Origin: Entomortierella parvispora E1425
Taxonomy: Eukaryota > Fungi > Mortierellomycota
Reading direction: 5' to 3'
Assembly (NCBI GenBank): GCA_020891255.1
Contig: BQFW01000011.1
Span: 1,240,001 to 1,304,000 of the forward strand
DNA length: 64,000 bases
Shown: one piece after another, positions 5,777-16,400 of the stretch
Layout: the number at the start of each line of letters is the position of its first letter
Position numbering within the stretch: the stretch's first letter is position 1
Notes under the pieces: generated by a model
Database searches by the model: none
Told to the model about the DNA's origin: nothing
What the model saw: only the letters and a program-made list of their open reading frames with translations
Translations under genes and position numbers: made by a program

Positions 5777-7320
5777 ATGAGCTCGTTCGAAAAAGTAAAG
5801 AATCCAGCGCTACAACTCTCGTCATCGGATCAGGGGACACCTCATATACTCGGGAAAAGAATGGCGCATGGTCTGGACCCATCATCAGGATCTCTTCATT
5901 AGGAGGAATGGCTCGGGCGGGGTCCATTTGGTCCAGGATGGAACATGTCAAGGCGAATCCAAGATCGATCGGGGTCCAATGGGCCCATTGGACATTTGAC
6001 ATTCTGAAATTCAACCAAGCGTCAATTCAGGAATTATCATGCTCGCCCATCTCGTCATCACGATGGAATCGTCTGGCATGGTTCTGGAATCATCATCGTC
6101 ATCCATGTCGAGATCATTGTCAATTTTGGACATGGCATTTTCAACTTTTTACCCAACAAACCAATCAAAGGAAAAAGTCAACCCCAAGGAGTTCAACAAC
6201 AACACAGGCCGCTTTGCGATGACCAGTCGTCTAACCAAAGGAAACTTTTTTTTATTGTCTCTTTCAGGTGGTTGTCATCGACGGTAAAGGCCATCTCTTG
6301 GGTCGCCTCGCCTCCATTGTTGCCAAGCAGGCCCTCACTGGTCAGCGCGTCGTCGTTGTCCGCTGCGAGGAGTTGAACGTCTCTGGTTCCTTCTTCCGCA
6401 ACAAGCGTAAGTGAATCGTCCAACTTGAGGCAAAAATTCAAAAAAGGGGCAGACTCTGGAAGCATCGACACAAGACAGGAAGGACGACTGGACCACTGTG
6501 CCTACAGCGAGGAGGCATATCTTCATAGGAGCGATGATGAAGGGTTATCTCGTCAATGTTCTCAATATCAGTCAGAGGCACAGTGTTCGCGATAAGGCCA
6601 TGGTCCGTTATCAGCTGCTATGGTGATAGTCCTGGATACCTGTCAACTTCGACCGTTGCATCATGGTGATTCCTTCTTTGGACGGTGGACACGCTTCGCT
6701 ACAAGGGCGGCTGTCTGTGTAGAGACCGTTGAGGCGCAATCGACAATGAATCTCTGCATTGTCAGATTCTTTCGATAGCAGAGCAACCAGACCTTGGAGA
6801 CTCAAGACCTACTCTTTTCTCGAGACCATGCTGTTAACCCAAACAACTTTTATTTTTCTGGACTCTAGTGAAGTACCACGCTTTCCTCCGCAAGCGTTGC
6901 GTCGTCAACCCTGCCCGTGGTTCCTTCCATTTCCGCGCTCCTTCCCGCATCTTCTACCGTGCTATCCGCGGAATGGTTCCCCACAAGACCGCTCGTGGTG
7001 CTGCTGCCCTTGACCGCATCAAGCTCTTTGAGGGTGTCCCCCCACCATATGACCGCATGAAGCGCATGGTCGTCCCCTCTGCTCTTCGCGTCCTCAAGCT
7101 CAAGCCCGGTCGCAAGTACTGCACCATCAAGCGTGTCTCCCACGAGGTCGGCTGGAAGTACAACGATGTTGTCGCCAACCTCGAGGAGAAGCGCAAGGTC
7201 AAGTCCAAGGCTTTCTACGAGCGCAAGAAGGCTATTGCCAACGTCCGCGCCAAGGCTGTCTCTTCCAAGACCTCCGAGTTGGCTGCCGTCCAGGAGAAGA
7301 TCGCTGCTCTCGGTTACTAA
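5777..7320 (+). CDS. RPL16: 60S ribosomal protein uL13 (3 exons: 5777-5794, 6268-6406, 6869-7320)
   Basis: Spliced [27 protein letters not shown]...[47 protein letters not shown]; strong codon bias. Confidence 0.97.
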
Positions 7321-9321
7321 ATTCTTTAGAGTCGTCCTCCCATTGCTCTAATGAATATACGTTTCAAAAACATGGCTCGCTTCCGTTTCTGTTGCTTTTT
7401 TTTTTTTTTCGAGGAGTGCCACATATTATTGTTTGTTTTTCGGGATTATTTCTTTGAATCTGATGGAAATGATAGATATGCAATTGCTGTGGAATATGAA
7501 GAATGTGCAAGGATGCAACAGGGGCGGGATCTGGATCCGCTAAAAAGACTTGCACCAGGACACCAGGGGGCAGGATCAAGACTTGTCATCTCCACATTTC
7601 CTAGGAAATGTAGCATGTCAGACGCGACCTGAAGACTTTAGGCGACGCGATTAAAACTACAGGAACCTGTTTTCAAGAAAGAGTGTCCACAGCCTGTGAT
7701 ACCCGATGCTCACTATAGCTTCACCCCACAGTGGCAGGAGCAGCATGTGCAAAAAGGCCTTTTGCTCAGCACTTTGGATTTTTTTTCCTGGCTGAAAGAA
7801 GAAACTTTAGAGGAGAATGCTCCCAAGGATCCAGCATTATTCGTGTCTCACGTCCTCGCATTTTGGTGGCATGGAAGCAAGTTTTCCCAGCAAAGTTTTT
7901 GCCTCCCCAGTTTTTTGCAGATTGCTTTGCTCGGGGCGACGAAAGGCCACGAAAGGCCACGAAAGCTAGGGGTTGAGAGACGCTAAAGAATCCTATTTGA
8001 CGATCGGTCGATCATGCTTGGCCCGTTCTTCTTTTTTCTTCCTTTAGCCCCACCTTGCAGAATGTTTTGTTGACTGGGCGTTAGGCTCGTGCACTGCGGC
8101 CGGTCGGGATGCAAAGCCTCAAGAAACAGATGTTTAATGGACATCTATCCCTTGGTGGGTGGGTCAAGAGGAATGAGAGGACGTGGAGTGAGAAAGTAGT
8201 GTGTTTGTTATTGTTGTTCCGTTCTCTCTCCGGCATCCTGTTGGTTCATTGCTTGGGGGGTGAAAGAGGGTGTATGTTTGTTTGTTTTGATTCTCAGCTC
8301 GCTCTTGCCGACATGGATGGGCTGTGATGTATCTTTTTGGTTTGTTCCCCTTCCTTTCTAGCCTTCTTCCTCCATACGCTCTCATGGGCACAAAGACCTC
8401 GGAAGGCTCTTGTGACCAGGATTGTAGACGGAGAAAAAATGAGCGCAACCTGTCTTATTGAATCCAATGGGACATGGTTTTGAGTGATACCTTCGTGCAT
8501 GTAATGCGCTGAAATTCATGTCGGACATGTGCAAATAGATGGAGATGTGTTAAACGCCATACCAATGCAGGGCTGCAATATGAACAACTGAAAGACACCT
8601 TGTTTTTTTTGGGTTCCTACTCTTGTCCTCCTCTTTCCCCCCAATTCGTTGGCTCCCTTATGAGCGTAATCCCGTGCCAAGGAGCAATGGTGGTCCGCGA
8701 GTTGTTCAAGCTTGGCAGTTGCCGATCTGGCACCTGAAAGGACAAAACAAAGAGCAGTACGTCTGGGCAATCTTGCCGATAAACAATCGGGGTAATCTCC
8801 AATGGACAATGAGACCCCAAAGATAACACAATTGCGTCTTTATCATTCAGAGCGGCGCCAGGTCCACCCATATGCAGCATTCATAGGCGGAGTATTGTTA
8901 GTAGCACAACGAATGCCTTAGGTTCCCCCAAAAAAACCCATCGACAGATACCACGTCCATTTTACCTACCAGCGGCAGTAATATTTATCACCAGTTGCTA
9001 CTAATGGCAAAGTACCTCTGTGTTTCTGAGTTACGTATCTCCATCTGCAGAACTCGAAAGCGCGTGTCCATGCCCACGAGGAGGTACCGGATCGGTTGCC
9101 AAGGACGGTTCACGACGTCCTGCTGATGCAGGTCTCACCGATCCCCCTCGCCCTGCCCTGTTGTCCTCCGCTTGCCCATTTTTTTTATTTGTTTGTTTTG
9201 AATTCGGGCCAAAGATGAGTGTTACGTAGTGAACAAAAGGTACCGTAATTAGCAAAGACTGCAGTAGTTAAGTAGTCATTACAGAATTAAAGGGATAACA
9301 AGTAGAAAGCCAGAATGTTGT

Positions 9322-12300
9322 TTATTCAATCGCAGCTGCAGGTTTTTTTTTGATTACTTTTCTGTGGTAAGAACATATACCCCCGGCACGCTCAATTGGT
9401 TCCCGAAGACTTTCAAACGCCAATTGTTTTCGCACATCCAAGTCACGCTCAGCAGGCATCTCATGAATCATACCCAGAACGTGATAGATCACATCCTTGA
9501 AGTACTGGTAGTTTTTCCTATTGGAAACTCCAATATTGCCCCTGCGATATCGCCAATCTTTGCCAAAGGACACATCTAGTTGCCAGATAGGAGGGGTAGC
9601 TCCAGAACCTCTGAACCACCGTCGCCATATCTCATCCAAATCGACGGGTACGGCGTCTTTTCTGTTCCCATCTCGCGCCAGCACAATATTATCAATATTT
9701 GGAGTTATCTGAGGTAGGGTCCATATTCGCTCAGAAAAGCTTGCTGCAAGCGCCGCAAGGTGACCTTCGAGATTTCCCTCCAATTGACGCTGCTGCTGCT
9801 GCTGATCGTGCTCTTGTAAAATTGGCGTTTGCTGTTGCTGTTGCTGTTGCGGTTGCGGTTGCGGTTGCGGCTGCGGTTGCGGTGGTGGTGGTGGTGGTGG
9901 TGGTGGTGGTGGTGGTGGTGGTGTTGTTGTTGCTAGGTGTTGACTTTGTTGTTCTAGATCAAGATCTTCATCAAGTCTGATCTCGAGTCGCCGTTGCTTT
10001 GTTCGTTCCCTACGACGATCTATCAAAGTCTCGTCGTCGTCATCATCAACTTGTTCCTGTTCGTACTCTTCATCCATGATGGACAATGCATGTGGGGAAG
10101 GGGGTAGTGAGCGGATAGGAGGTGTTGACGATGGCACATCCACAACGTCTGGAGCAATACGTGCATTTTGATGAGTTGTCTGGTTCCGCTGCGCTACGCG
10201 GGCCTCCTCCCGCCGATGTTTTCTTAAATTCTCTGCCATGACCATTCCCGAGACTTCTAAGCCGAGCTCCATGCTCTCCATGTTTTTTCGCGTTTGTCGA
10301 GGTTGAGTAGAGGTGGGATGGATCTGAGGTTCTTGCGGTGTTAAAGATGCAGGCCTTCGGACTGCCTGTTGTATTTGCTGGACATGCTGAATGCATTCGA
10401 TAGGCGCAAAGACTTGAGTGCGCAACGAATTCTCCAGCTCTGAAGCAGTTCTTGCAAGGCTTATATCATTTGATGCGGATATGCCAGTCATCTGCCTCAT
10501 TTGTGCTCGAATCTGAAGATCCGCCGCTCGTAACATATCAGAGAGCATTGAGAAGATCCCCATTGTGGCGTGTTGGTTTAATTCTCGATGCTGCTTTGCA
10601 AGTGAATCCATGACGTTCACGTTCAATTCGCGAGATGTTGCTGCCTCGTCCCTTAGAATCTTGGGGAGACCTTCAGTGATCGCCTTTAGTTTGTCCAATT
10701 TCGACTCCACAACTTGATTGTGATGATGAAGACCCGGTAAATTGGCCTTGATACTATCTGACAGAGGCGAGACAGATGTTTCCATGGATTCGATCAGGTT
10801 TTTCTGAAATTCTAGGAACTCGATTGATTTGAAAAGATCGATGTCGAAGATCTCATGTCGATGGTAGGGGCGATCTGGGATTGAGAGAGACATCAAGGCG
10901 ACTGCGTCCTGCAGCACAACTTTGCGGAGGTGGGCGAGAAGAAGAAGAAACCGTATGAGCCTAATGTCCCTCTTCTCTATAGGCATGCGACGATCGACTG
11001 GTCGATTCAAATACATATCTCGATCCATCATGACGTTTTCGACCCATACTGTCCAGTCGGGGTACGTGAAGCATGTCTCTATGAACGGAAAGACTTTTCG
11101 CTGCAAGTTGGCGTCTGGAGTAAGAGTGTTCCGAGCTAACCAAAGGCGTTCTCCAGGCAAAGTACAACCAGCCAGTTTCATAGGAACATCCTTAGGGAAA
11201 CTGCTGAGGTAGTGAGTGACGACTCGCCTTCCTGTCTGCCAACGACCATGCTGAGAAATTGCTTCGATATCAGCTCCTGCTTCCTGTGCATGCCGTGCTC
11301 CTGATCCACGATGCCCGTGCAGTGGTTTGCTAGTTTTCACTCCAATGCTATCCAGCCCTGACTTGCCGGCCGCGCGGTGGGTGGAATCATGCATCTGTTT
11401 TCTTTCGTCATTTCCAACAAGCAGAAAAATGTCGACCCAGGAGTTATCTGCGGGGTCAAACTTTTTAAGCTGAAGTGGAAAAAAAAATGGGATAAAGTCA
11501 CTCAGTTAATTGTATGGCCTTCAACATATCAACAAAAACATATGGCACCAATATTTAATGGCTATTACCAAGAAACGTTCGAGAAGATGAAGCGCCAGGC
11601 TGCCAACAGGACATATCTGAACATCCTTGTTCCTGACAACGCTTCCATAGGCCGCCTTTCCATCTCGATTCGTCTTTCCTCGCAACATTTGAAGGATAAC
11701 TCCCAAAGTGAACTGGTGACCATCCTTCGGATGTTCATATGCATGAGAGAATATGTCAGACAACCTGGCCATACGCAAGTTTTCGCCTCGAGACATCATG
11801 AAGTGCAGCCAGGATCCACTAAGACGACTTCGAAATCCGACGATCTTCTTTCTCTTTGTTCTTCCGTGGTATCTGTGTTGCCAGCCATCCCACATTAAGG
11901 CAGACAACTCTGGTATATCATATCCACTGTCAAAGTTGAGAGTCGCTGTGTCTTCTGAGGTGAGTTGGGCGGAATACTCCAGAACATATCCCTTCATGAG
12001 TGAAGACAGCTCTGGAGATCGTAAACTGATCGTAGGATGCCCAAACATAACCTTGTTGCTCGGATCTGCCTTTTGCATCTTAAAAAGATCGAAGCAGGCT
12101 TTGACGTATTGCATGACTGTTTCTGGAGCCGGCAGTTGGCCGTCAGGATCATAGCCATCCTTTGTTTTGCTGACTCGTAGAGGGCGAATCCCTTTTGGCA
12201 GCTCAGGGTCGACAGGGTGTTTGGCGACGTTGTGGGTCATGTAAAGGAGGAAGCGACTGGGAAGTACATTGGGTTTGACATAGCCCATTCGTTTGCACCA

Positions 12301-13447
12301 GGCCTATTGTCATGGGAGGTAATGGATTACTCTGTTATGGTCAATAACGTTTGAAAATGATGAGCCAGTCAACTGTAGCAGCAGCATTCTATTACCACCC
12401 AGTGCCTCTGATAGCGGCCATATGTTGCCTGGGTACTCTTGGCCTGTTGTTGTTTGCCTTGGCGAGCAGCTTGCTGCAGTGCGGAGATCTCCATGTCTGC
12501 GAGTTGTTGGTCGAAGTCTTGATCGTCTAAATAATCTCGACGAGCGGCAACGTCCTCTGTTCCTTGCATGAGTGGGTCATCGCTAGCATCCAGCTCTTGA
12601 TCGGCGATAAACTGAACAGGTCCATCATCAACCTCCAACTGGGCCCGCTCCTCGTCCTCCGCTCTTTCACGGTCAATTTCTTGCTGGGACCGCATGATTT
12701 CTTCTGGCAATGATTCTCGGGAGGACTGAGTCAGCTTGGCCACAGCCAAACGCTTTTTGGTCTCCATCTTCCTCAATTCCCTAGTCTGGTCATCTTCCTC
12801 GTCATATTCCGAGTCAGAGGATCCATCGCTCTCGTAGTCACTGCCATGGGCCTCGGATGTCCTCAAATCCAACTCCCCCTGTGAATACACAAGCTCTGCT
12901 CCACCAAAGATATCATCCATGCAGTCTCGGTGAGGTCTCTGCGTCATATGCGCTTTTGGTAACCGCGAGCTAGCTTCTCCTTCCGACAGATCGCTAGAGT
13001 CTTGTGGGATAGCACGCTCTTTCCCCTTGGAGGCGCTATATGACAGGTCTCTGTCATTATTTTGCTGATTTCTGGGGCCACGTTTCTTGCCTTTGTCGCT
13101 CCTGGATTTTCTCTTTTGAGGAACAGCATTGCTTGCACTCGAACCAGCTTGCGCTCTTTCGTTTTGGTTCTCGTTCATTTCACCCTGTTCAGATAGTGGT
13201 AATGCATATGCTGATGAAGATGACCCTGAGGAGCTAGATCCCGAAGTCGCATGAACTTCATTAGACACCAAAGAAAGCGAATGAACATCCAATCCTTCTT
13301 TCGCTATGCAGCCATGTTTTCCATGCTAAAGCAGACAGTGCGACAATGTGCAAACATACCCAGCGCATGAAGAGCAGTTGTTGTCGCATTGAAGTCTACA
13401 TTGGGTTGGGTTGTCCTTGCCGCCCAATGGCTCTGGGAACTGAACAT
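9322..13447 (-). CDS. Crypton tyrosine recombinase with C-terminal GCR1_C-like DNA-binding domain, about 1290 aa (exons 13447-13360 tentative, 13303-12396, 12303-11569, 11469-9322)
   Basis: Three track ORFs join in frame through GT-AG introns. N-domain TQATYGRYQRHWVAWCKRMGY; catalytic-type motifs MMSRGENLR (R), RGKTN (K), LHGHRGSG (HxxR), HGRW (W), THYLS (Y); C-terminal DLDEIWRRWFRG...PIWQLDVSFGKDWR. Confidence 0.88.
9787..9932 (-). repeat. Compound coding microsatellite (CCA)n/(CAACCG)n/(CAG,CAA)n giving poly-Pro, Pro-Gln and poly-Gln tracts
   Basis: Visible GGT, GGTTGC and GCT/GTT runs on the plus strand inside Crypton exon 4. Confidence 0.9.
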
Positions 13448-16400
13448 GCAATCTTCCCTCGTTTGGAGATGAAACGTTGGCTAATGGTTGTCCAGCGTGG
13501 GAAAAAATAGTGAGCAGTCGGTAGGGATAGTTTGGCGAAGGAGGGGGAAGAAAGGAAAGAAACGAGGCGCTCTGGATCTTGAGAATTAGAGTGAGTAAGA
13601 AGGAAGGGTGTTAAGAATGGTTGAATGGTTCGCGGAAAGCATGCAGCGTGCAATGCAGTCGCGCCACCAACTCCAACATAAAAAGCCCAGCCCAAAACCC
13701 CTTAAAAGACTTAACTACCCTGTCCCTCGCCCCGATGCGATTTTCGCCTTCACGGTGTTCACGCACAGAGTGACTTTTCTTAGTTTTTTTTTACTTTAAG
13801 CCACCAATTGAATTGACCTTGTGAAACTGTGTTCACGTTAGACCAATACAGTACCACATCGACCGAAAGAGTCAAGTCACCCTTTTTTTTGTGACCAAAG
13901 CACCATTAACCATGAGTTTGTTTTCTTCAATTGCTTGTTCCTGCGTCGTCTTGTGAAGATGACCCTTTGTGTTCGTCCTCCCCCAGAACCGAGAGACTTC
14001 AAAGTTCTAATTAACGAGAAAAAAAAAGAAAACGGAGGCAATGGCTGTGCCATCCATCGAAAAATAATACTGTAATAAAAAAAAAAGGCAGGCGAGCTCT
14101 TCCTCCACCTCGGCTGAGGAAATTCAAAATACAACTTTCCTGGACAGGCCACAATAAAAATACATGGCCATTCCCCCCCCCCCCCGAGATCGATGAGCAG
14201 TGGTGTCGTGGTTAGATCGTCAGTGGGTAGCCTCGACGAGATAGAGAGCGTTGGGGGGTGGCGGAAGGATGCACCTTTGGATGAGCGACTCCAGGCATTG
14301 ATTGGGCAATGATCAAGTGGTCGATAACAAAAACAAAAAAATAGAAGCGGGCTAGCACTCTGCTGGAAAAAAAAAAGAGGCCGAGGTTCAACCACAGGTG
14401 GAGAAAAGTGAAGGGAAACAGTTCTACCTCGTCCTTACTGTGGCTGTTGCTTCCTCTCAACGGCACTGGAGGACTCTGTTCTCCTTCGACTCTCGTTCCT
14501 CCCCCCGCTTGCACCCCCTTTTCTTTTGTTGTTTCCTTCTCCACAATTCCTCTCAGTCATAAATTTTGTTGTTGTCACTTCAGGCGCTCGCTCAATCTTT
14601 TCTCCAGTAAGAAGGGAGGACAATCGACCATCCCTTGTTTTTTCCTGTGTAAAGTGAATAGTGAGTTCAAAAATGGGAGCTGTTCAGGCCTCCTTGCCTT
14701 TCGAGTCACCAGACTGGAGGTGGTTGCAACTTGGGTGAGGCTTGGTACATGTTCCTTTCTCTTTCTCCAGGCTTCGCAAGGTTCATTGCCTCCTACCTTT
14801 CTGGTTTCCGGTTTATCTTGCTATGCTTCACACCATGGAGCCCCCGCATGCAAAAAAAAACGAACGAGCTTGTCCCGTTGACATATGTTCGACCCGACAG
14901 ATAACTGATTTCTGTTTTGTCCTTTCGTCTACTGCTCTTGGGCGAACAAAAATAAATGGGCGACCTTTTTCACGTTTGTGTGCAACAAACAATAGACCAT
15001 GGGAGGAAGAGCCGGCTCGTAAACAAGTTTTTATTTTTCCTCCTTGTTTTACTGTCTTTGCGCGCTTTGGGCTACAATATTGTTCCCTCTTTTTTTTGTG
15101 TTCAGGGCGTGGGTTCATATCATTACGTCCTTGCATGCGGTACAGGTCACCCTGAAAGAGTTGTTCGTGTAGCCACAAAAAGGCGGAATGGTGCATTCAG
15201 CGCGTAGAGCATGTTTGTAACAGCGACAGGAAATGATGTTCCAGGGCTTGTTTGTATTAGGGCGGTTTGCTTTGTTTGTGTGCATTGTGCAAAGGGACAT
15301 CTGTTCAGGTACCATCGAAAAAACGTGCATGGGGGAGGGGGGATGAATCTAAGGTGGGAAAGCGGACAGATCATTCCTGATTGAGGGACAGGGAGGCAGG
15401 GAGTGGGTAAGAATGTGTCGTTGGGTACCTTTCTGCGGAATGACATGTTGCCCATAGAAGGCGATACGGATTACAGTACCGGTACAAGCAGAAGGGGATT
15501 GGCAACCTTTTTGGAGCGGAAAAGAAAGTTTTTCTTCTGACGGACAAGATGTAATTGCTCCTGCGAGAGTTGAGATCATTGTAGCGTGATGGGCCGTTGC
15601 GCATTTTTTTTATATCTTCTCTCCGTCGAGAGTTGCAGCAGATGGTGATGGTCGGAAGAGGTAGCATGACCTTGACTTTTCCTCTGCATCCTCAACGGAT
15701 CCCCTCCTGGTAGCCAAGGGTGAAGTTGGGAACCACGACTTTGTGGTCGATGAATTGCACATGTCACCTTTAACCCAAAAGACACCTGGCAACAAGTAGC
15801 AAGCGTGTGATCCAATGTAACCCGCGAGTAAGAATAGCCTACCAGGGGCAGGAACGAGCAAAACAACCAACGTTTGAAGCGAAGCTTCTGAATGGCCAAC
15901 TCTTTCTTCGGTACCTTGGATACCACCACGATGATAAAGCGGAACAACAACAACAATAACAGGCACATCCTGACAACAGCAGAGGCAACGCAGTCAATCC
16001 GACGAGTCGCCGCTGTGGTCGCTCTGAACTTTTTCTCAGCTGTTGCTTTTATTTCGGCTTATTCAATTCGCCAAAGTGCTTGCCAATGTAATGAAATAAA
16101 AAGTAAACCCAAACGGTCTCCATTCAATCCCGATCTGTGTCATTCAGTCCCTTCTCTCGACACGCTGTCATGCTCTGCTCTCAAGAGTTGCAACCTGTCT
16201 GTGCCATCAGGGCCATTTCCCTTTCTCGCTGTCATCATCACACTGTGGCTCTCATTGCTGCCTGCCATTGAATACTTTACGGTCCGTCTACCAATTCAAC
16301 CAACCCTATCCATCATTATACTTTGTGCCGTGGCCCTCACAGGGGTCTCTGGGTCCATTTTGGTCCATTCGATTTCCTGCTCCGCTTCTGTCGCCTTCGG

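Follow-up and report, generated by a model that had tools for sequence, protein, structure and literature searches.

Introduction

Few eukaryotic DNA transposons have been studied as little as Cryptons. The CryptonF group combines a tyrosine recombinase (YR) with a GCR1_C domain and has terminal direct repeats of 4 or 6 bp; it is known in Zygomycota and has already been reported in the zygomycete Rhizopus oryzae (PMC3212892). An active CryptonF of Chlamydomonas ends in CACCG and targets CAYCG, and Crypton movement was first directly seen only in Chlamydomonas (PMC9977147). Our literature search found no published Crypton description in Mortierella or Mortierellomycotina and no fungal Crypton shown to move. 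The present study concerns an element in a 64,000-nucleotide stretch of Entomortierella parvispora E1425 (contig BQFW01000011.1, positions 1,240,001 to 1,304,000), which is called the window here and is numbered from its first letter. The window very probably holds one copy of a CryptonF-type YR DNA transposon in a Mortierellaceae-like fungus, with a single three-exon gene for a protein of ~1221 amino acids (aa).

In fungi and oomycetes, CryptonF elements (Crypton-Cn1 and its relatives) have one gene that encodes a tyrosine recombinase followed by GCR1_C, no terminal inverted repeats (TIRs) or long terminal repeats (LTRs), short terminal direct repeats as presumed crossover sites, and low copy number (Goodwin et al., 2003; PMC3212892). 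The window element is like them in each of these features. It differs in its Mortierellomycotina host, its long protein, its acidic N-terminal exon, and its linker with a poly-Pro/Gln microsatellite, and its repeat is 4 bp long (ACTG), whereas 6 bp is said for most fungal CryptonF. CryptonF-1_cRei of Chlamydomonas reinhardtii is similar in that its terminal motif is also its target motif (CACCG/CAYCG there, ACTG here), and it too has near-identical copies and truncated copies (PMC9977147). Its activity was seen in mutation-accumulation lines as excisions and rearrangements, whereas in the present fungus it is copy identity only that points to activity.

Copies and Termini

The genome that was searched is one assembly of 38.9 Mb in 20 contigs. 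It contains eight copies of the element on seven contigs (contigs 1, 4, 5, 6, 7, 9, and 11, with two copies on contig 6). The copies are 99.4-99.9% identical and differ pairwise by 0-8 substitutions over 4620 aligned columns; the seven complete ones are ~4.81-4.84 kb long. Similarity starts at the same base in all eight copies (ACTGTATTGG...) and stops at the same base in seven (...TTCTGGATACTG), and these seven have ACTG at both ends. The flanks of the eight copies are unrelated to each other. An earlier reading of the window, made from the sequence alone (the sequence-only reading), had called the element potentially active and had proposed a copy count, and this dispersed, nearly uniform set of copies with differing flanks bears it out. 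Because of the copy number, the near-identity, and the exact site-specific ends, we favour a family that appears to have been mobile very recently, and that may still be live, over a domesticated gene. The window copy and its remaining terminus are located as follows.

9256-13852, minus strand: window copy of the Crypton, 4597 bp, with its 5' end at 13852 and truncated at 9256 compared with the seven complete copies.
13849-13852, minus strand: ACTG at the 5' terminus, the presumed crossover site; complete copies have this 4-bp direct repeat at both termini.

At 66 nt past the stop codon the window copy ceases to resemble the other seven, and it is without their final 232 bp, among them the 3' ACTG. 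A genome search found this 232-bp tail at the seven complete copies only, and it is not present elsewhere in the window. Both flanks of the window copy are single-copy in the genome. The sequence-only reading had described a complete copy at 9264-13718; the points where similarity to the other copies starts and stops correct these limits to 9256-13852, and the missing tail shows that the copy is not complete. It was right that the reading frame is open, and all three exons of the window copy are uninterrupted. This copy is probably still a source of recombinase. It is probably not itself excisable, because with the 3' 232 bp one recombination end has been lost.

When one complete copy and its flanking DNA were scanned for repeats, no TIR, LTR, or split direct repeats appeared at the termini, and no second open reading frame (ORF) with a Pfam match lies within the element. 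ACTG occurs 19 times inside the element, and therefore a 4-bp motif is not enough by itself for specificity. In four of the eight 5' flanks, TGG lies within the 4 bases that precede ACTG, like the element's own ...TGGAT-ACTG end, and this post hoc reading of eight sites suggests a half-site preference.

Two further observations concern the insertion sites and the 3' tail. Copy L008 (C4 ~2124985-2129800) is inserted in an (ACTGG)n-like microsatellite, which is a run of the element's crossover motif. The tail of the complete copies contains an exact 14-nt direct repeat, GCAAATCCATTCTG, with its two units 23 nt apart (L005:1379-1392 and 1402-1415) and ~120-155 bp from the 3' terminus. This repeat is absent from the window copy, and it might be a candidate protein-binding site.

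Gene Structure

An ORF scan of the window showed minus-strand ORFs at 13292-12369, 12288-11521, and 11394-9322. The three ORFs are predicted to be spliced through two introns into one gene of ~1221 aa (261+245+715), with the following parts.

13179-13848, minus strand: 5' non-coding region, presumed promoter and 5' untranslated region.
12396-13178, minus strand: exon 1, starting at the first in-frame ATG (261 aa), acidic and Ser-rich.
12304-12395, minus strand: intron 1, 92 nt, GTAATAG...CAATAG, phase 0, with a counterpart in the same place in the metagenome contig L037.
11569-12303, minus strand: exon 2, 245 aa, coding for the N-terminal part of the recombinase and its predicted first catalytic Arg (R172) and Lys (K210).
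11470-11568, minus strand: intron 2, 99 nt, GTAATAG...CTTCAG, phase 0, with an L037 counterpart in the same place.
9322-11469, minus strand: exon 3, 715 aa and stop, C-terminal half of the recombinase, long low-complexity linker, and GCR1_C-like domain.
9256-9321, minus strand: 3' non-coding sequence, 66 nt, up to the truncation point (...ACTACTGCAGTCT), beyond which the DNA is unique.

Intron 1 begins after GTG with GTAATAG at 12396/12395 and ends in CAATAG, with exon 2 starting at 12303; intron 2 begins after TTG with GTAATAG at 11569/11568 and ends in CTTCAG, with exon 3 starting at 11469. The donor heptamer is common to both introns, and exons 2 and 3 are exact multiples of three. The earlier proposal that the three ORFs join in one frame is thus confirmed in the sequence, through two predicted introns that are canonical and phase 0.

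The frame of exon 1 is open from 13325, and the first ATG in it, at 13178, is the predicted start codon. The sequence-only reading had placed a small exon in front of it. At 13326-13368 there is an ATG (13368), followed 9 nt on by a GTATGT donor (ATGCGCTGG-GTATGT) and, 34 nt further, by a TTTAG acceptor; this mini-exon would join the frame of exon 1 in phase, and its ATG is the sole one nearby with a donor. However, a 34-nt intron is probably too short to be real when the two others have 92 and 99 nt, and the closest relative has an N-terminal ORF comparable in size (332 aa) without such an exon. The protein length of ~1290 aa given earlier is likewise too high, as the exons add up to 1221 aa from the first in-frame ATG. 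Conservation in exon 1 is limited to its last ~36 aa (...KST..YGRYQRHW). Neither exon 1 nor the ORF at 13396-13695 in the 5' region matched a Pfam family. Similarity searches and structure models, here and below, were made exon by exon.

Among database relatives, P0001, which comes from soil metagenomes, is the nearest; exon 3 is 55% identical to it, and exon 2 is 46% identical. It sits on a 6.7-kb contig (L037) that is laid out like the window gene, with three ORFs in a row on one strand (332, 254, and 550 aa), and the last two carry NDC10_II. The first L037 junction runs from RHWN through GTAAGT...CTTAG to AWC (87 nt), and the second runs from LWQ through GTATGG...TCCAG to HPR (90 nt). Both introns have the position and phase of those in the window gene, and in L037, too, the length of exon 2 is divisible by three. 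Protein similarity begins, in both species, right at the acceptor sites (AWC after acceptor 1), upstream of the first ATG of each ORF. The splice model is therefore supported by intron positions and phases kept in a relative that is 46-55% identical.

Homologues of exon 3 (P0001-P0007) are 36-55% identical to it, and their sources include Benniella and Lobosporangium, in keeping with a Mortierellaceae host. The element accounts for gene models that are now in databases merely as exon-3 fragments under the name "hypothetical protein." P0006, an annotated protein of Benniella sp., no longer has the catalytic His and Tyr (TLYSR..., ...AHSL) but keeps GCR1_C and the remainder of the domain; it is a domesticated derivative or else a copy in decay. 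Public assemblies were searched for the exact product of the 690-aa ORF, and no record turned up. Comparison of the element termini with the DNA of the metagenome relative gave nothing convincing (best match 25 nt, E 0.008, ~2.6 kb upstream of the relative's gene), and the 5'-terminal 30-mer is not in the metagenome contigs.

Recombinase and DNA-Binding Domains

In the window gene, the Pfam family NDC10_II was found in exon 2 (E 1.3e-7, profile positions 38-116) and in exon 3 (E 7.8e-8, 32.2 bits with a cut-off of 26.3, profile positions 131-314); the domain is split by the intron between these exons. GCR1_C was matched in six of eight aligned sequences, at the aligned position, with a best E of 1.2e-9. 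Pfam Phage_integrase had no match at E<=1. Of the three profiles that the sequence-only reading had proposed to search, NDC10_II was found, GCR1_C was found weakly in the window protein, and Phage_integrase was not found. The predicted functional sites are listed here.

11779-11793, minus strand: motif SRGEN (11793-11779).
11668-11679, minus strand: motif GKTN (11679-11668).
11308-11319, minus strand: motif HGHR (11319-11308).
11239-11247, minus strand: motif GRW (11247-11239).
11206-11217, minus strand: motif THYL (11217-11206).
11790-11788 and 11676-11674, minus strand: predicted exon-2 catalytic residues R172 and K210, respectively.
11209-11319, minus strand: predicted C-terminal catalytic set, H51-x-x-R54 (11319-11308), W77 (11241-11239), and nucleophile Y87 (11211-11209).
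9829-9921, minus strand: coding microsatellite (poly-Pro, QP repeats, poly-Gln) with in-frame length differences between copies.
9487-9636, minus strand: predicted GCR1_C-like DNA-binding domain, exon 3 aa 612-661 (PF12550, E 0.0019).

All five motif strings had been pointed out in the sequence-only reading, and all are present. Distant Crypton-like, exon-sized pieces that are 28-42% identical were collected from the same genome for alignments. In the exon-2 alignment (11 paralogue pieces), R158, E174, R177, K210, and G215 are nearly invariant, G209 is invariant, and the catalytic R172 is retained in most pieces. In the exon-3 alignment, R54, G75, and W77 are nearly invariant and Y87 is invariant.

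A full-length exon-3 profile compared with PDB was swamped by low-complexity matches, and a trimmed profile was used instead. With the trimmed profile, Cre made up 13 of the 14 matches (E 0.15) in gapless alignments of 44-45 residues, and hhalign of exon 3 with the Cre recombinase of phage P1 gave E 4.6e-4 and a probability of 33%. In both comparisons, H51, R54, W77, and Y87 fall on Cre H289, R292, W315, and Y324 (Cre residues from the P1 record). Overall similarity to Cre is very low. In exon 2, the spacing from the first Arg to Asp is 11, the same as in Cre, and RGKT resembles Cre RTKT by eye. The claim that the motifs occupy YR catalytic positions thus stands for H, R, W, and Y on the Cre sites. 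The case is weaker for the first Arg and the Lys, whose predicted roles are supported by NDC10_II, motif spacing, and paralogue conservation.

NDC10_II and GCR1_C are also the two Pfam domains of the yeast genes Ndc10/Cbf2 and Gcr1/Msn1/Hot1, and the sequence-only reading had offered "domestication in progress" as an alternative to a live element. A Crypton-derived host gene family of this type, domesticated or on the way and no longer a transposon, shares its domains with the window gene but is very improbable. The yeast genes are single-copy and their catalytic site is not preserved (PMC3212892), whereas the window protein keeps H-x-x-R, W, and Y and is encoded by a multi-copy mobile unit. 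The near-identical copies have exact common ends with terminal ACTG repeats in unrelated flanks, and the non-coding 5' and 3' parts were copied with the gene. Single-copy, syntenic conservation, which the sequence-only reading had named as the sign of domestication, was not found, and neither was a degenerate catalytic site; the element is multi-copy and dispersed.

Variation Among Copies and Autonomy

As assembled, six of the eight copies have +1 homopolymer frameshifts: exon 2 has T6 instead of T5 (window ~12087) in four copies, exon 3 has A5 instead of A4 (window ~11402) in four copies, and L004 carries further indels. All exons are open only in the window copy and in the contig-6 copy L005, and L005 is the only copy with both ends and open exons. 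Three markers (T5/T6, A4/A5, and a long or short poly-Pro microsatellite at 9903-9924) occur in all eight combinations across L001-L008, and therefore a simple copy-and-diverge history is no explanation. The combinations could come from recurrent slippage, exchange between copies, or assembly/polishing error. The last is a serious alternative because differences between copies of a second Crypton family in this genome, described below, are also almost all +-1 homopolymer indels (~11 indel sites versus 2 substitutions). The +1 homopolymer frameshifts may thus be assembly noise.

It is possible, though unlikely, that the ACTG family was mobile until very recently and is no longer autonomous. The six frameshifted copies and the loss of the 232-bp tail from the window copy, with L005 left as the only intact member, speak for it. 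However, the +-1 homopolymer pattern in both families suggests assembly error, and one complete open copy together with the open gene of the window copy would be enough to provide recombinase in trans. The 0-8 substitutions per 4.6 kb also imply very recent movement.

The marker combinations, which suggest exchange between copies or recurrent change, are also the evidence for a source of the copies other than transposition, in which a 4.8-kb segment underwent segmental duplication or gene conversion. This explanation is extremely improbable. Similarity ends at the same base, at ACTG on either side, and the flanks are unrelated on seven contigs, whereas segmental duplications are without identical, site-specific ends.

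Other Crypton Sequences in the Genome

The second family, one of several more distantly related Crypton-like families in this genome, is ~4.15 kb long, and its copies are 99.7-99.9% identical and begin and end with CATT. It is found at L039:2679-6838 (C7 ~880679-884838) and also at L040, L041, L042, L043, and L044, and its protein is ~36% identical to that of the window element in exon 2. Head-to-tail pairs of this family with a single shared CATT are present at L041:~6869-6873 (C8) and L042:~7038-7042 (C13). Such pairs would be expected from a circle integrating at the end of a resident copy, or from a dimeric circle. Indirectly, the pairs favour the circle model in this organism.

Further Crypton-like coding pieces, 28-42% identical, were found at C1:1931737-1933176, C10:676642-678403, C2:1585572-1586389, C11:40635-41452, and other places; some of these distant pieces are multi-copy and some have stops. 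The genome houses a diverse Crypton population. A 240-bp stretch at L009 (C15:271286-271527) has 73% DNA identity to window ~9347-9588, which lies at the 3' end of exon 3 and overlaps the GCR1_C-like part. It may belong to a related family or to a Crypton-derived gene.

Classification and Proposed Mechanism

Placement in CryptonF is based on domains, termini, and element layout, and NDC10_II and GCR1_C are taken to stand in for a tree. The features expected of this group were found: short (4-6 bp) direct repeats at both termini, of which the window copy keeps the 5' one only; several copies in unrelated contexts; C-terminal catalytic residues H-x-x-R, H/W, and Y; a C-terminal GCR1_C domain; and no TIR, LTR, reverse transcriptase, or DDE transposase. 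The Crypton identity proposed in the sequence-only reading is upheld by this combination of a YR-type protein with 4-bp terminal direct repeats.

Several other kinds of element also encode tyrosine recombinases, and the locus could in principle be a Starship "captain" region, a DIRS/Ngaro fragment, a CryptonA (DUF3504), or a MarCry-like composite moved by a DDE enzyme. That it is one of these is scarcely credible, as Pfam searches gave no DUF3435, DUF3504, reverse-transcriptase, or DDE match, and the whole element is a 4.8-kb unit with one gene and without TIRs, LTRs, or split direct repeats. Starship, DIRS/Ngaro, and CryptonA candidates were each considered and rejected; there was no captain, reverse transcriptase/RNase H, or DUF3504 match, and no cargo within the shared boundaries.

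We infer circle formation, present-day activity, and target preference for the CryptonF-type element. Its predicted protein would consist, in order, of an acidic N-terminal extension, the recombinase domain, a low-complexity linker, and the GCR1_C-type DNA-binding domain. In a mechanism that follows the Goodwin/Kojima model and what was observed in Chlamydomonas, the recombinase would pair the two ACTG-bearing ends, and the element would be excised as a circle with one ACTG. The circle would then insert at a genomic ACTG, often with TGG just upstream as at the element's 3' end, and insertion would leave ACTG on either side of the element. At the circular junction that would result (3' end, ACTG, 5' end) there is no convincing palindrome and, in contrast to the Cre system, no clear lox-like inverted repeat.

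Some results weigh against this explanation of the element. GCR1_C is weak in the window protein itself (18.9 bits, below the Pfam cut-off of 23). The Cre match is statistically borderline, although the aligned motifs are in exact register with the active site. The exon-2 sequence and profile gave nothing significant against PDB, P1 Cre, or lambda integrase (Int), which leaves the N-terminal half, and with it the first Arg and the Lys, without a significant alignment. AlphaFold models of the exon-2 and exon-3 half-domains, made with paralogue alignments, had a mean predicted local distance difference test (pLDDT) score of 40.7 and 60.8, with values <50 over the motifs, and are too poor to use. 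For the ACTG family, neither circles nor tandem junctions came to light: a 28-mer of the predicted circle junction (...TTCTGGAT, one ACTG, TATTGGTC...) is not in the genome or in the metagenome contigs. Finally, with six of eight copies frameshifted and the window copy truncated, current autonomy of the ACTG family is not certain.

We also consider, as a tentative proposal that is somewhat doubtful, that this fungus has at least two currently live CryptonF families (ACTG and CATT) with footprints of a circle pathway and element-like target sites, and that the ACTG copies exchange sequence.

Significance

CryptonF was already known from zygomycetes, and the present element leaves the understanding of this kind of element unchanged. 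Base-exact ends, a 4-bp crossover site, near-zero divergence, and the tandem junctions of the sister family lead to testable predictions for circle junctions, empty sites, and target motifs. If the proposal of two live families is true, this Mortierellaceae-type fungus, which can be cultured, would offer a practical way of demonstrating Crypton circles and site choice directly, for the first time in a fungus.

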